From Zygnema circumcarinatum SAG 698-1b (lineage: Eukaryota > Plantae > Zygnematophyceae): 64,000 nt of DNA. Positions within the stretch are counted from its first letter, which is position 1. Each line of letters starts with the position of its first letter. The stretch lies in assembly GCA_037447605.1 (NCBI GenBank), contig CM074823.1, positions 124,001 through 188,000 of the forward strand. Reading direction: 5' to 3'. Below are positions 27,460-35,126 of the stretch, in pieces. Under the pieces are notes generated by a model. That model did not search any database. It was not told the origin of the DNA and saw nothing but the letters and a program-made list of their open reading frames with translations. Both the position numbers and the translations under genes were made by a program.

Positions 27460-30400
27460 TTAGTTTCCCTTCACAGTGGTGACCAACAAGGATCCCGGGA
27501 CGGCCAAAACCGCCACCGCCAGTTTCTCCCCTGCGTGAGACGAAAATGTAAACAACAAAAGGGGGAAAAAAATGGAGTTGGGAAGGTCAGGAAACGCATG
27601 CAAAAAGTGGAAATAAAGAAACAGGAAAAGAAACCTTCCCTCTCTCTCGCTCTCCTCCCCCCTCCCCCTCCCTCACTCATTCTCTCTCTTTCTTTTCATT
27701 CTGCCCCCCACACCTTGAACACTATCCTTTCTCCCTTCTCTCATCCATCCCTTCCAGCCTGCCTCTTCTCCTTCCTCACGTCCTCCCTCTCCCTCTCCCC
27801 CCCTTTTCGTTTCCTACTTCTCTCTCAGTGCAACCACAGTGAGAAGGGACACCTCACATAAGAACATGAAAGGAGAGACACACAGAGAGAGAGAGAGAGA
27901 GAGAGAGAGAGAGAGAGAGAGAGAGAGAGAGAGAGAGAGAGAGAGAGAGAGAGAGAGAGAGAGAGAGAGAGAGAAGAGAGAGAGAGAGAGAGAGAGAGAG
28001 AGAGAGAGAGAGAGAGAAGAGAGAGAGAGAGAAGAGAGAGAGAGAGAGAGAGAGAGAGAAAGAGGCACTCCCCAACTCCACCTCGATCCCACTCACCCAG
28101 GGCTTGAACTTGCGTGTCGGAGCCCTCCTCCCTGCCAAGTGGCGTCTCCTCATCGGTCGCCGTCAGCCCTCCCATCATCCCATTGCGCCACGTGTGCACC
28201 CTCCCCTCCCTCGTCACTCCTGCGCACACTCCCGCTCCGATCGAAACCGAAACGATCAAATCTCGGCCCTTCAAATTAGGGCGATTTCCCATCAACGGTG
28301 GAGATGGCGCGTTGAACACTCCCCGCAACGGATTGTGCGTTCCATGCGTCCAGTGATGCACCTCTCCGTCCTCCGTCAAAGCGACGAAATCCGCCGCGCA
28401 ACACCCCACGTCGATCACCTGCTCGATTCCGGCAGCTGTAGGGTTTAGGGTTTAGGGTCTAGGGTCTACGGTCTAAGGTCTAGGGTCTACGGTCTAAGGT
28501 CTAGGGTTTACGGTCTAAAGTCTAGGGTCCAGGGTCTAGGGTTTACGGTCTAGGGTCTAGGGTCTAAAGTCTAGGGTCCAGGGTCTAGGGTGTACGGTCT
28601 AAAGTCTAGGGTCTAGGATCTAGGATCTAGGGTCTAGTTTCTAGGGTCTGGGGTCTAGGGTCAAAGCTCTAGGGACTACGGTCTAAAGTCTAGGGTCCAG
28701 GGTCTAGGGTCTAGGGTCTATGGTCTACGGTCTAAGGTCTAGGGTCTATGGTCTAAAGTCTAGGGTCCAGGGTTCAGGGTCTAGGGTCTACGGTCTAAAG
28801 TCTAGGGTCTAGGATCTAGGGTCTAGGATCTAGGGTCTAATTTCTGGGGTCTGGGGTCTAGGGTCAAAGGTCTAGGGACTACGGTCTAAAGTCTAGGGTC
28901 CAAGGTCTACGGTTTACGGTCTTAAGTCTAGGGTCTAGGGTCTACAGTCTACGGTCTAAGGTCTAGGATCTAGGGTCTAATATCTAGGGTCTACGGTATA
29001 GGGTCTACGGTCTACGTTCTACGGTCTACGGTCTACGGTCTAGGGTCTAGGGTCTAGGGTTTCAGAGATTAGTGTTGCGAGTAGTGTTTAGAGTGTAGGC
29101 CTTCAGTTCACAGCCTAAGGGATTAAGAATTCAGTTGTTCAAATTTAACTTCTTCCCGTTAAATAAATTACAAAACGAGGCCCACCTTTCGACCGTAAAG
29201 ACTTCCGCCTGCAGGAATGCATTTGGAGAAATGCAAGGAAGCTTCCGAGAAGCTTCTTCCACTTCCGGCGGGAGGCGGCGCCACGGACCCGTCCCCCCAT
29301 GTCCACGCAGTTCCGTCGTCCGTTAAAATAATTGCGTAGTGGGAGGCTCCGCACTTCACAATAGAAGGGGAGGGAGGGAGGGAGGGAGGAAACCCACAAG
29401 TCAGAAAGTACAAGCAAGAAAGTACAACCCAGAAAGTACAAATCAGAAAGTACAAAACAAGAAGTACAAACCAGAAAGTGCAAATCAGAAAGTACAAACC
29501 AGAAAGTACAAACCAGAAAGTGCAAATCAGAAAGTACAAACCAGAAAGTACAAACCAGAAAGTTAGGTTTGTACTTTGGCGGAAACACAACATCGCATAT
29601 TGAAGTGACGGAGAATGAGGTCAAATATGGAAAACCTGGTCCTCTAAACCCACGAGAGATGCCTTTTAAACAAATCCCTGAAAACCCCATCTCAAACCGT
29701 AAAAGCCCTAAAACCCCGAATTTTTTTAAAACTTAGCAACCTAACCCTAAAAACAAACCAGTCAGAAAACGCTGTAGGAACACATCGAGACAAACATTTT
29801 CATGGACAGAATAAAGTCGGTGAAAAGTGCATAAAAGGATAGGAAGGGTCATCTACGCTTACCACAAAAGAATAATACCTGTGAATACATAAAACACGCA
29901 ACAAAAGCATTTCGAATTTTGAAATTTGATTGAAAGTTTTATTTGCACCTGAATTTTTTCGGCCTTTCCGGTGTAACCTTCGACGCAGTGCACCTCCTCT
30001 CCCCAAAGGTCACTTTTGGCAGTGCGAATGTACACTCTGTTCTTGTCGGTGATGTACCTGTGTGGGGGGCGAGAGAGAGAGAGAGAGAGAAAGCGAGAGA
30101 GATAAGATAGGGGGGAACGTAGAGAGAGAAAAAACAGAGAGAGAGAGAGAGGGAAGGAAGAGAGAGGAGAGAGGGAGAGGGAGAGGGGGGAAGAGAGAGA
30201 GGGAGTGAGAACAAGAGAGAAGGGGGACAGCGGGGAAAGAGACGAGCGAGTGAGACACAGAGAGAGAGAGAGAGAGAGACAGAGAGATGACCCCTCCTTC
30301 CCCGCTCCCCTGCCCTCTCCCACTCTCTCCCTCTCCCTCTCCCACTCCCTCTCCCTCTCCCTCTCCCTCTGTCGAGCTCCCGCCCCTCTCGCTGTCATTG

Positions 30401-33400: not shown

Positions 33401-35126
33401 GGGTTTTGGGTTGATTTCCAAGCTTTTGAATATTAGGCTTTCCAAGGCTCATGTTTTGGATGTTCAGCGTTTCGGCGAGTGAGTTTTTGGGCTTTTGTTT
33501 TTGCAGGTTTTTGAAGCTAGTTTTTTCCATAATTCTCACCCTGTAAAAGGACTCCTTCTCGTAGAAATTTTTCACGACTCCACTGAAATATTTTGCTCCG
33601 AATTTTTTCCAAACTTTTTTTCCGACCATCTCCGCCCCGGGTCCATGCCGCCAGTTCCGTCGCCTCGCACCGAGTTCCATGACGGGGTCCTCGTCGATCC
33701 GTACTCTCTGCACGGAACGGAAAGCATCCGGTTCTATGTTAAAACTGTTTTTGGCTCATTCCGTGACAGAAAACTGAACAGAATCAAGAGAAACTAAAAA
33801 GACTTAGCGATCAGTGATACCTTGAATCGCATTCTTTGTGGTCGACCGCTCCGTCGCTCTGTTTCGTTCTCTTCCGCATACAACCTGCCAAAAAACCCAC
33901 ATAGAGAAAGAGAGAGAGAGAGAGAGAGAGAGAGAGGGAGAGAGAGAGAGGGAGAGAGAGAGAAGGAAGGGGAGAGAGAGACAGAGACAGAGAGAGAGAG
34001 AGGGAAGGGGAGAGAAAGAGATTCAATTCTCAGTCCTCTTGAATACATGAGTGTTTATAGGGTTTCCAGACATCGAAGTTCATCCCGACACACAAATTTA
34101 GGGTTCAGAATTTCAAGGTTTGAGGTTCACTTTCATATTATAAGTTTCGGGTTGAAGGGGTTCACGGTCTGATAACTCACTCCTCGCTTGTGCCGTGGCT
34201 GTACGGCCTCTTCACTCCTCCCTCTCTTCCCTCGTCTCCACCCTCCTCTCCTCTCTCCTCTCCCTCCTCTCCTCCCTCTCCCCCCTTCACTTCCTCCTCT
34301 CCGCCCTTTCCTCCATTCTCTCCCTCCACTCCTCCCTTTCCTCCCTCCTGGGCTCCCTGGACTTCTATTTTCTCTCCTCCCTCCTCTCCACCCTTTTGCC
34401 CTCCCTCCTCCTCCTCCTCCTCGCTCTCTTCTCTTCCCTTCTCTCCTGCACCCTCTCCTCCCATACCTCCTTCCGGTTCTATGCTCAATTCCGAAACGAT
34501 TGGTGCAGGAGGGTTAAATCCAAAATCACTCCGTCTCTCCCCTAATTCTTCGAGCAGAGCAGGAGAAGATGAAACAAGAGAAGTCTTTCCCTCACTCAGA
34601 GAGAGAGGCTCCAGCTCAGCTCCCTTTTTCTCTAGAGAACGAGAAATATCCATGGCTTCCGCCTTCCCAGCGGCTTCAGACTCCTGCAACCCTCTCCTCT
34701 CCTCTTCCGTCATACATGGTTTTGAAGCTGCAGGAGCTTCTCTACCACCACCCTCACTCATATTCACTCCTATCTTATCATCCTCGTCTCCAAAAAAGCC
34801 TTCTACAGACGGTCCTTCAGCAGTTTCTGGAAACGAACCCTCCTTAAGAAGTGTGGTCACATCCATAGCTACTGCTCCCTCTCCCTCGCCCCCTCCCTCT
34901 CCCTCTACCTCTCCCTCTCCCTCTCCCTCTCCCTCTCCCTCTCCCTCTCCCTCTCCCTCTCCCTCTCCCTCTCCCTCTCCCTCTCCCTCTCCCTCTCCCT
35001 CCCCTCTCCCTCTCCCTCTCCCTCTCCCTCTCCCTCCCCCTCTCCTTTCAAGATATTCCCTACTTCAGCTCCTCCAGCTGAGGCAGCCGCCTCCTTTCCC
35101 CCATCAAAATCTTCTTCATTCAACAT
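27460..35126 (-). CDS. Multidomain protein: acidic Gly/Glu low-complexity N-terminus, PTM/DIR17-like Tudor domain and RCC1-like beta-propeller, ~1016 aa, 12 exons
   Basis: Exons: 35126-34181 (one missing C near 35003 inside a GGAGAG repeat), 33884-33821, 33707-33540, 33245-32713, 32246-31997, 31660-31463, 31063-30980 (GC donor), 30623-30487, 30057-29949, 29353-29186, 28418-28097, 27530-27460. All phases chain. Tudor: MVGKKVWKKFGAKYFSGVVKNFYEKESFYRVVYSDGDKEDLWWHELKSIL. RCC1 repeats include KIQCGASHYAIILTDDGTAWTWGDG, GRKVIDVGCCAADFVALTEDGEVHHW and VSVSIGAGVCAGVTREGRVHTW. Confidence 0.8.
28441..29065. repeat. Degenerate telomere-like TCTAGGG/TCTACGG/TCTAAAG heptamer array in an intron of the Tudor-RCC1 gene
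   Basis: About 620 bp of 7-nt units, starting as GGGTTTA and drifting to GGGTCTA and variants. Confidence 0.9.
29401..29562. repeat. 14-bp minisatellite in a Tudor-RCC1 intron
   Basis: CAGAAAGTACAAAC and variants, about 11-12 units. Confidence 0.9.

Follow-up and report, generated by a model that had tools for sequence, protein, structure and literature searches.

A 12-exon algal gene predicted to encode a single-Tudor member of an unstudied plant family of Tudor-propeller proteins

The minus strand of the 64-kb window, meaning the whole stretch of DNA analysed, carries a 12-exon gene model (27460..34866) with a coding sequence of 2790 nt, equivalent to 929 amino acids. The best explanation is a single intact nuclear gene encoding a Tudor-propeller orthologue, of about 929 residues, of a land-plant family, with the chromatin role proposed below, a reading to which we assign a probability of roughly 0.8. 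Judged by its sequence, the gene is a single-Tudor member of a plant family that is catalogued and machine-annotated, and unstudied. The predicted protein would begin with a disordered acidic segment, followed by one PDS5C/RDM15-like Tudor barrel and a disordered, basic NLS-like linker, and would end in a divergent but complete seven-bladed propeller.

The 929-codon frame contains no internal stops, and the phases agree across all 12 exons (Table 1), confirming the hidden 12-exon gene with consistent phases of the original prediction, whose junctions 32713/32246 and 31997/31660 are recovered exactly. The introns comprise 11 GT-AG and one GC-AG. Pfam and homology searches were conducted exon by exon. 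Exons 1 and 2, which supply the acidic N-terminus, are placed by the open frame and splice phases only, and no homologues of either were found. The exon 1 product is acidic, Gly/Glu-rich and of low complexity, and the 5' end of the gene is uncertain because this exon lacks homologue support. Pfam matches to TrAA12, GGN, and Gelsolin, including a spurious match in exon 1, were discarded as low-complexity noise.

Alignment with orthologues and the reading frame required corrections to the start codon and to two splice junctions. A protein of about 1016 residues starting at ATG 35126 had been expected, but this codon lies 260 nt upstream of ATG 34866 and therefore reads in a different frame from the main ORF, its own frame stopping after 73 codons at 34907-34905. 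Reaching about 1016 residues would thus need a further, unsupported intron within the GA repeat; the start at 35126 was rejected, and the first in-frame ATG gives the 929-residue product. Unless a putative extra intron is invoked, the stretch upstream of exon 1 is a uORF/5'UTR. The GC-AG intron after exon 7 and the shifted exon 10/11 junction were forced by the orthologue alignment and the conserved introns. All GT donors keeping the conserved part of exon 7 are in phase 1, whereas the conserved exon 8 acceptor at 30623 is in phase 0, and with the GC donor at 30979 the orthologous junction is recovered, GSxxxxx followed by V/C. A GT donor at 30976 (phase 1) combined with an exon 8 acceptor at 30580 was rejected on orthologue alignment and conserved intron phases, the orthologue tblastn HSPs starting at 30602-30605, upstream of that acceptor. 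On the same grounds, an exon 10 end at 29194 and an exon 11 start at 28435 were replaced by 29186/28418, which fit the orthologous junction LVxxK/VVD.

Table 1. Exons of the algal gene model and the adjoining upstream stretch (a slash within a donor or acceptor marks the splice point).
Feature	Coordinates	Strand	Description
Upstream stretch	34867..35126	(-)	ATG 35126 opens a 73-codon ORF through (GGAGAG)n, in another frame
Exon 1	34181..34866	(-)	First in-frame ATG 34866; 228 codons + 2 nt; donor GA/gtgagt, phase 2
Exon 2	33821..33884	(-)	64 nt; phase 2 to 0; canonical AG/GT
Exon 3	33540..33707	(-)	Tudor N-terminal half, VGKKVWKKFGAKYFSGVV...FYR; PF21743, tblastn against orthologue Tudors
Exon 4	32713..33245	(-)	Tudor C-terminal half VVYSDGDKEDLWWHEL, (GE)n linker, NLS-like stretch; donor CT/gtaagc, phase 2
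Exon 5	31997..32246	(-)	Linker, FFAWG strand, (GE)n insertion, start of blade 1
Exon 6	31463..31660	(-)	Blade 1 into blade 2; collinear with orthologues by tblastn and MAFFT
Exon 7	30980..31063	(-)	Blade 2; GC donor AAT/gcaagt, phase 0
Exon 8	30487..30623	(-)	Blade 3, ending DVSVGTVTSANESPFI; phase 0 to 2
Exon 9	29949..30057	(-)	Blade 3 into 4, YITDKNRVYIRTAK…KIQ; 50-61% identity to orthologues, exact exon ends
Exon 10	29186..29353	(-)	Blade 4, CGASHYAIILTDDGTAWTWG…LYGRK; revised donor AAG/gtgggc, phase 0
Exon 11	28097..28418	(-)	Blades 5 and 6, VIDVGCCAADFVALTEDGEVHHWTH … GRVHTWRNG; revised acceptor gagcag/GTG
Exon 12	27460..27530	(-)	Last two strands of blade 7, EKLAVAVLAVPGSLLVTTVKGN; TAA stop 27462-27460

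The Tudor domain is divided between two exons, with the 48 positions of Pfam profile PF21743 running contiguously across the splice and split exactly at the exon 3/4 junction. Exon 3 matches profile positions 1-28 (22.2 bits) and exon 4 positions 29-48 (26.3 bits), while the untrimmed ORF piece 32712-33335 reaches 32.1 bits against a gathering cut-off of 27.2 bits, bearing out the expected PTM/DIR17-type Tudor. The alga has one copy, compared with two PF21743 domains in the land-plant orthologues: when the whole window was scanned in six frames for the motif Y-x-D-G-D-x-E, a single site turned up, and tblastn with orthologue Tudors detected no second copy in the alga. Because only one Tudor is present, the gene is filed as a single-Tudor variant or outgroup member of the family. 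In a profile search, the closest Tudor of solved structure is that of RDM15/PDS5C bound to H3K4me1 (PDB 7DE9, E 3e-4). The Tudors of MSH6 and PDS5A are related to that of RDM15/PDS5C.

Land-plant proteins of the same architecture were identified when exon 11 was searched against the whole library with HMMER. The matches are 46-57% identical, extend over a single stretch, and lie near the C-termini of plant proteins of 800-1400 residues. The first search returned Amborella, ferns including Adiantum, Ginkgo, Selaginella, and Sphagnum, and a second added the conifers Taxus and Cryptomeria, the clubmoss Diphasiastrum, and Physcomitrium. All plant matches possess two PF21743 Tudors and a C-terminal RCC1-like domain, and the Tudor-plus-propeller architecture is shared by at least 12 species of land plants ranging from mosses to Amborella. 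The original view that it was unknown in plants therefore does not hold, a family of this architecture already existing among machine-annotated land-plant proteins. Members include Amborella LOC18443927 (XP_020528980.1), Selaginella LOC9637453 (XP_024533525.1), Physcomitrium LOC112294574, Sphagnum jensenii CAK9255508.1, and Ginkgo Gb_11614, with database names limited to "uncharacterized" or "Tudor domain-containing". Several orthologues derive from transcript assemblies, for instance a complete ORF assembled by Trinity and Logan contigs of about 4.8 kb with a 1367-residue product, so in other species the fusion lies on one mRNA. Library searches yielded no member among flowering plants outside Amborella, which may explain why the architecture had been taken as unknown in plants. 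No description of a Tudor-RCC1 family was found in the literature on plant Tudor and RCC1 proteins or on PF21743/DIR17-like proteins, and the papers on H3K4me1 and PDS5 Tudors make no mention of RCC1. A metagenome sequence (P0033/L003) considered as an algal relative was rejected, being a moss gene with two Tudors that is 78-87% identical to Physcomitrium in parts.

The linker and propeller follow the Tudor, and the basic NLS-like stretch and lone FFAWG strand described beforehand are both present: exon 4 encodes a bipartite stretch, KRK...KGKKRP, and the FFAWG velcro strand of exon 5 would form the last strand of blade 7. Exon 5 aligns to the orthologue segment EYFGWGE...LLPTSSPIVHLA and exon 12 to the segment xATKVMCVAGSLIVVVKK. 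Exons 10 and 11 match Pfam RCC1_2 with 24.1 and 24.5 bits, both above the 22-bit cut-off, and exon 11 also matches HERC2 RLD1 (E 2.3e-13). The whole-domain WD40_RLD profile scores 30-65 bits, with 29.6 bits in the alga, and the alga and all orthologues fall far below its 150-bit cut-off. The AlphaFold2 model of the Selaginella orthologue (P0040) displays two Tudor barrels with pLDDT of 85-89; its residues 405-790 fold into a beta domain of seven blades (DSSP) with a moderate pLDDT of 55-80. This modelled propeller best matches HERC2 RLD1 end to end (Z 23.6, rmsd 4.2 A, 304/357 residues), followed by RPGR, RCC1, and UVR8. Together with the collinear alignment of algal exons 5-12 to all propeller blades of the orthologues, the model is consistent with the complete RCC1-like propeller with velcro closure predicted for the alga.

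The presence of RCC1 and UVR8 among the structural matches (Z 21-22, about 2 Z units from the top match) raises the alternative that the propeller is an RCC1 relative of enzyme or sensor type, for example a photoreceptor like UVR8 or a Ran/GTPase exchange factor, which the Tudor merely localises. We consider this improbable. Scores are almost the same for every RLD structure, so that fold similarity cannot tell one function from another, and Pfam RLD scores fall far below cut-off. The family-specific HxWTH, VHTWR, and VWVWRN stand in place of most canonical RCC1 repeat motifs, and the conserved Trp, as inferred from the family motifs, occupies the ordinary 'WG' strand position rather than UVR8-like GWRHT motifs.

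Conservation across the protein bears on whether the gene is intact. Of the 195 near-invariant family positions covered, 130 are kept in the alga, with 36/40 in exon 11, 77/93 in exons 9-12, and 24/46 in blades 1-3. The weaker blades 1-3 could suggest that this copy is a pseudogene, decaying or not expressed and full of GA microsatellites, yet exons 9-12 retain most of their positions, and 2790 nt in 12 exons contain neither stop nor frameshift. The (GE)n microsatellite insertions in exons 4 and 5 would suit decay, but every one is in frame and falls in a loop or linker; the one non-GT donor would as well, although its strong gcaagt consensus is typical of genuine GC-AG introns. Decay is also compatible with one Tudor in place of two and with the outcome of a word search for protein fragments of transcript origin spanning the end of exon 4, which gave one candidate and no match. 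Overall, a pseudogene appears very unlikely, and an intact gene remains the preferred reading.

Gene structure provides further evidence of orthology, as the orthologues are collinear with algal exons 3-12 (tblastn, MAFFT) and all nine intron positions and phases conserved in Selaginella (L001) and Physcomitrium (L002) recur in the alga. In both species, the phase-0 intron after the YK/YR pair of exon 3 is found in both Tudors, and the phase-2 linker intron between Tudor and propeller has a same-phase counterpart. The phase-0 junctions HLV/AS (exons 5/6) and ED/P (after exon 6) match HLA/xS and EDQ/VP, respectively, and the split Gly codon after PFI (exon 8), the junction KIQ/CG after exon 9, and the split Gly codon after L at exon 12 are likewise conserved. 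The least credible alternative, a small Tudor gene ending near 32710 beside a separate downstream RCC1-like gene with a coincidental in-frame join, can draw on the TAA at 32711-32709 that the exon 4 frame meets right after the donor, where an unspliced transcript would end, but is opposed by the collinear Tudor-linker-propeller proteins of the land plants, some known from transcripts, by the shared phase of the linker intron, by the RCC1 part in exon 5 having no in-frame ATG upstream within the intron, and by the position of the velcro strand in exon 5, directly after the Tudor-propeller join. Collinear orthologues and the same-phase linker intron thus support one gene rather than two, as originally proposed.

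For this single Tudor-propeller gene, a nuclear chromatin-reader role can reasonably be inferred because the Tudor keeps the Y-x-D-G-D-x-E residues of RDM15/PDS5C. The linker would carry the protein into the nucleus, where the Tudor would dock on a lysine-methylated histone tail, a low-methylation H3K4-type mark being the best guess, and the propeller would act as a platform for nucleosome or partner binding at marked sites. More tentatively, and with considerable doubt, the Tudor-RLD family as a whole could be an unrecognised histone-methyl-lysine reader (possibly of H3K4me1) that places a propeller on marked chromatin, having had a single Tudor before land plants, a duplication in the land-plant ancestor, and a loss in flowering plants after Amborella; if that loss is true, Arabidopsis-centred work would miss the family on account of it.

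The significance of these findings lies in a deeply conserved plant Tudor-plus-propeller protein lacking a literature description, although the architecture itself is not new, and in a family that predates land plants, with a single Tudor in its algal form. Arabidopsis and rice cannot reveal the family's role because it is apparently missing from flowering plants other than Amborella, whereas Physcomitrium has an orthologue and is genetically tractable, making the chromatin role of a Tudor-tethered propeller directly testable. For annotation, the locus illustrates that predictors can overlook a conserved gene when its introns are rich in GA microsatellites and one of them is GC-AG.

Comparison with known systems places the Tudor closest to RDM15/PDS5C, with which it shares the core G-x-V...V-x-Y-x-D-G-D-x-E-x-L. 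In Arabidopsis RDM15/PDS5C, the Y-x-D-G-D-x-E residues bind H3K4me1 and H3R2, with Asp643 and Asp645 contacting the monomethylammonium and Glu647 contacting H3R2. The motif reads Y-S-D-G-D-K-E in the alga and Y-E-D-G-D-E-E in the family, aligned to Y-D-D-G-D-Q-E in RDM15, and equivalents of Tyr641, Asp643, Asp645, and Glu647 are kept in both the land-plant family and the alga; in the alga, Tyr641 is matched by Tyr and Tyr623 by Phe. Unlike in RDM15, the VWWP loop carrying the cage Trp616 is two residues shorter in the Tudor-RLD family, with a conserved Phe nearby instead; since the Trp616 position is absent, and PDS5B reportedly no longer binds H3K4me1 once the cage Trp is lost, H3K4me1 is only a candidate ligand for the family. 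The host also differs, being an RCC1-like propeller protein rather than a HEAT-repeat cohesin regulator.

The propeller resembles those of HERC2 (RLD1, 4L1M), RPGR, RCC1, and UVR8 in its predicted seven blades and N-terminal velcro strand and in its RCC1_2 signatures in blades 4-6, with the orthologue model scoring Z 21-24 over about 300 residues at an identity of only 14-20%. Unlike HERC2 and UVR8, the algal protein has no HECT domain and no UVR8 chromophore motifs, and its propeller is fused to a Tudor. Relative to the land-plant family, the alga has a single Tudor rather than a pair, carries the (GE)n insertions, and lacks both the C-terminal basic tail and the His/Cys-rich HGNIHTRCNEWEH loop of blade 1. 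A metal-binding role was considered for this loop, which the alga does not conserve and which is therefore not ancestral. The alga and the land-plant family share the order of Tudor, basic disordered linker, and seven-blade divergent RCC1-like propeller, along with the motifs YITDxxxVYIRxA, CGxxxHAIIxTDDGxAWTWG, DFxALTxDGxVHxWTH, and GxVHTWR.

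Judged from its sequence, the Tudor-RLD locus, which joins a Tudor domain to an RCC1-like propeller (RLD), is a real gene, and it is considered previously unannotated because an exhaustive HMMER search of the collections returned no protein more than 57% identical to exon E11. Its exons, rebuilt by sequence reading, location of splice motifs and phase checking, run along the minus strand from 34866 to 27460. Together E1-E12 add up to 2790 nt, equal to 929 codons plus the stop, with 0 internal stops, and the introns comprise 11 of the GT-AG class and one GC-AG, the latter following E7 with a consensus gcaagt donor. 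Two junctions of the original prediction, 32713/32246 and 31997/31660, are reproduced exactly, but its start fails: ATG 35126 lies 260 nt upstream of ATG 34866 and is therefore in another frame, where the ORF closes after 73 codons. Consequently, the proposed length of ~1016 aa is obtained only with an additional unsupported intron inside the GA repeat.

Exons of the Tudor-RLD gene and other features (window coordinates; ^ marks a splice junction)
Feature	Position	Strand	Remark
E1	34866..34181	minus	open frame and phase; no homology support
E2	33884..33821	minus	open frame and phase; no homology support
E3	33707..33540	minus	
E4	33245..32713	minus	
E5	32246..31997	minus	
E6	31660..31463	minus	
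E7	31063..30980	minus	
E8	30623..30487	minus	
E9	30057..29949	minus	
E10	29353..29186	minus	
E11	28418..28097	minus	
E12	27530..27460	minus	TAA
GC-AG intron	30979-30624	minus	donor AAT^gcaagt
Minisatellite, intron E10-E11	28440-29110	minus	~650 nt
(GGAGAG)n	32900-33030		
(GGAGAG)n	32060-32125		
(GGAGAG)n	34880-35045		
EXO70-like gene	~20000-26100	plus	putative, multi-exon
Tandem array	37995-38500	plus	~72-nt repeats
1467-aa ORF	43776-48179	minus	intronless

The window is eukaryotic, with a G+C content of ~50%; (GA)n/(CT)n microsatellites are plentiful, and short gaps of N occur. Long (CT)n tracts occupy almost all introns of the gene, while (GGAGAG)n microsatellites lie in frame inside coding E4 and E5, where they read (Gly-Glu)n, as well as just upstream of the start. 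The E10-E11 minisatellite is built of 7-nt telomere-like units (CCCTAGA and CCGTAGA variants) and ends, directly upstream of the acceptor region, with two perfect plant-telomere units, CCCTAAACCCTAAACCCTACAG. The neighboring putative EXO70-like gene (exocyst subunit), recognized from motifs such as LMNNVHYMV in six-frame translation, is convergent with the Tudor-RLD gene. One frame of the tandem array reads GFRVQVKGYEFQFLNLRVQKSQVL, and the array is probably a non-coding minisatellite. The 1467-aa ORF has no exact match in the 15-billion-protein collection, which suggests that this genome's proteins are absent from it.

When each protein was mapped to its genomic locus (Selaginella, L001; Physcomitrium, L002), introns fell at identical positions in the two orthologues. 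These junctions are phase 0 at WYK^V (inside each Tudor), HLA^xSQHH, EDQ^VPDPF, GSxPxEP^VHT, KIQ^CG and LVxxK^VVD, phase 2 at PF(I/V)^G and phase 1 at L^G, and both species carry a phase-2 intron in the linker ahead of the propeller. The algal gene agrees with every one of them once two junctions are corrected, by pairing a GC donor at 30979 for E7 with the E8 acceptor at 30623, and by extending E10 to 29186 with E11 beginning at 28418. Both corrections improve the protein alignment (algal ...GGSLYGRK^VIDVGCC... versus ...VGTLVGRK^VVDVGCY...). The GC-AG intron is required for the phase conserved with land plants; since GT donors retaining the conserved part of E7 are in the wrong phase, predictors allowing GT alone would break the gene at this intron.

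In domain searches, run on each algal exon individually, E3 matched positions 1-28 of the Pfam PTM/DIR17-like Tudor profile PF21743 and E4 matched positions 29-48; the proposed splice therefore falls precisely at the break between the two parts of the domain. The predicted PTM/DIR17-type Tudor is thereby recovered, its C-terminal half alone scoring 32.1 bits on a longer ORF piece against a cut-off of 27.2, and a six-frame motif scan found this half once in the whole window. E4 also holds the (GE)n tract and the expected basic NLS-like stretch, a bipartite KRK...KGKKRP. The RCC1-repeat profile RCC1_2 exceeded the Pfam cut-off on E10 and E11, and E11 matched HERC2 RLD1 (E 2.3e-13), UVR8 and RCC1.

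The propeller was modeled on the natural Selaginella orthologue (P0040), folded with a 16-sequence family alignment. Two Tudor barrels reached pLDDT 85-89, the linkers were disordered, and residues 405-790 formed a beta-rich domain of moderate confidence (pLDDT 55-80). DSSP strands describe seven four-stranded blades, with a lone first strand (407-411, FAWGE motif) completing the last blade; the velcro closure proposed from a lone FFAWG strand and a partial last blade is thus borne out in this model, and by collinear alignment it would also hold for the algal protein. All best Foldseek matches, with E between about 1e-14 and 1e-12, were RCC1-like domains. In VIA-align, HERC2 RLD1 covered model residues 406-790 end to end (Z 23.6, rmsd 4.2 Å, 304/357 residues), followed by RPGR, HERC2 RLD2/3, WBSCR16, RCC1 and UVR8 at Z 21-23, with WD40 propellers at about Z 18.

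The exhaustive E11 search was run because the claimed novelty of the architecture depended on an absence of relatives. It returned generic multi-repeat RCC1 proteins and 10 representatives with one 46-57% identical stretch, located near the C-terminus in the full-length ones (800-1400 aa), every one of which carries two PF21743 Tudors and a C-terminal RLD (Pfam). Cluster look-up named orthologues in Amborella trichopoda (LOC18443927), Adiantum nelumboides, Ginkgo (Gb_11614), Selaginella (LOC9637453) and Sphagnum spp. (932 aa); the remaining representatives are transcript-sized Logan contigs. Further members, from Taxus, Cryptomeria, Adiantum capillus-veneris, Diphasiastrum and Physcomitrium, came from a word search that used the Amborella propeller as query, and neither search found the family in flowering plants besides Amborella. 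A complete two-Tudor orthologue with an RLD also lies at 3800-10740 of a 457-kb, 41% G+C contig (ENA metagenome ERZ25073694, ctg132166); parts of it share 78-87% identity with Physcomitrium, which marks the contig as a piece of moss genome within an environmental assembly. The combination of Tudor and RLD is therefore already catalogued across land plants, and the novelty claim falls to a known family of the same architecture. Database labels read only 'uncharacterized', 'hypothetical' or 'Tudor domain-containing', literature searches for a Tudor-RCC1 protein returned no description, and the family is known to databases alone. The algal gene is its first algal member among these searches, with one Tudor versus two, and E11 is about equally distant from all land-plant lineages (HMMER), a pattern that lends indirect support to a streptophyte-algal source. 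In land-plant members, blade 1 contains a loop rich in His and Cys, HGNIHTRCNEWEH (P0040 residues 464-476 in family alignment A1), by appearance a possible metal site; the alga lacks these residues.

A pseudogene is disfavored, as the alga retains 130 of the 195 near-invariant family positions covered (77/93 in E9-E12, 24/46 in E5-E8). Orthologues are collinear with E3 through E12 (tblastn, MAFFT). That Tudor and propeller belong to a single gene is further supported by several observations: Selaginella and Physcomitrium both have an intron of the same phase close to the place of the algal Tudor-to-propeller intron, E5 lacks its own in-frame ATG, the propeller's closing strand is encoded in E5, and transcript-derived orthologues exist.

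The solved Tudor nearest to the family profile is 7DE9 (E 3e-4), that of Arabidopsis RDM15/PDS5C in complex with H3K4me1. In the HMMER alignment, RDM15 V-I-Y-D-D-G-D-Q-E-I-L pairs with family V-x-Y-E-D-G-D-E-E-x-L. Family equivalents exist for Tyr641 of the aromatic cage, for the monomethylammonium-binding Asp643 and Asp645 and for the H3R2-binding Glu647 (Y-S-D-G-D-K-E in the alga); at the position of Tyr623, land plants have Tyr and the alga has Phe. Trp616, the third residue of the cage, belongs to a VWWP loop; the family version of this loop is two residues shorter and has a conserved Phe nearby. In PDS5B, loss of that Trp is considered to abolish the binding of H3K4me1. H3K4me1 is therefore a candidate ligand, and its specific reading by the Tudor is rated less likely than not. 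The basic linker suggests nuclear import, and a nuclear chromatin-associated reader or adaptor role is given a probability of about 0.5. Fold comparison by VIA-align does not separate nucleosome-binding from peptide-binding roles. RCC1 binds nucleosomes, and the RLDs of HERC2 and RPGR bind short peptide motifs; by analogy, the propeller could bind nucleosomes as the former does, or short peptides as do the latter.
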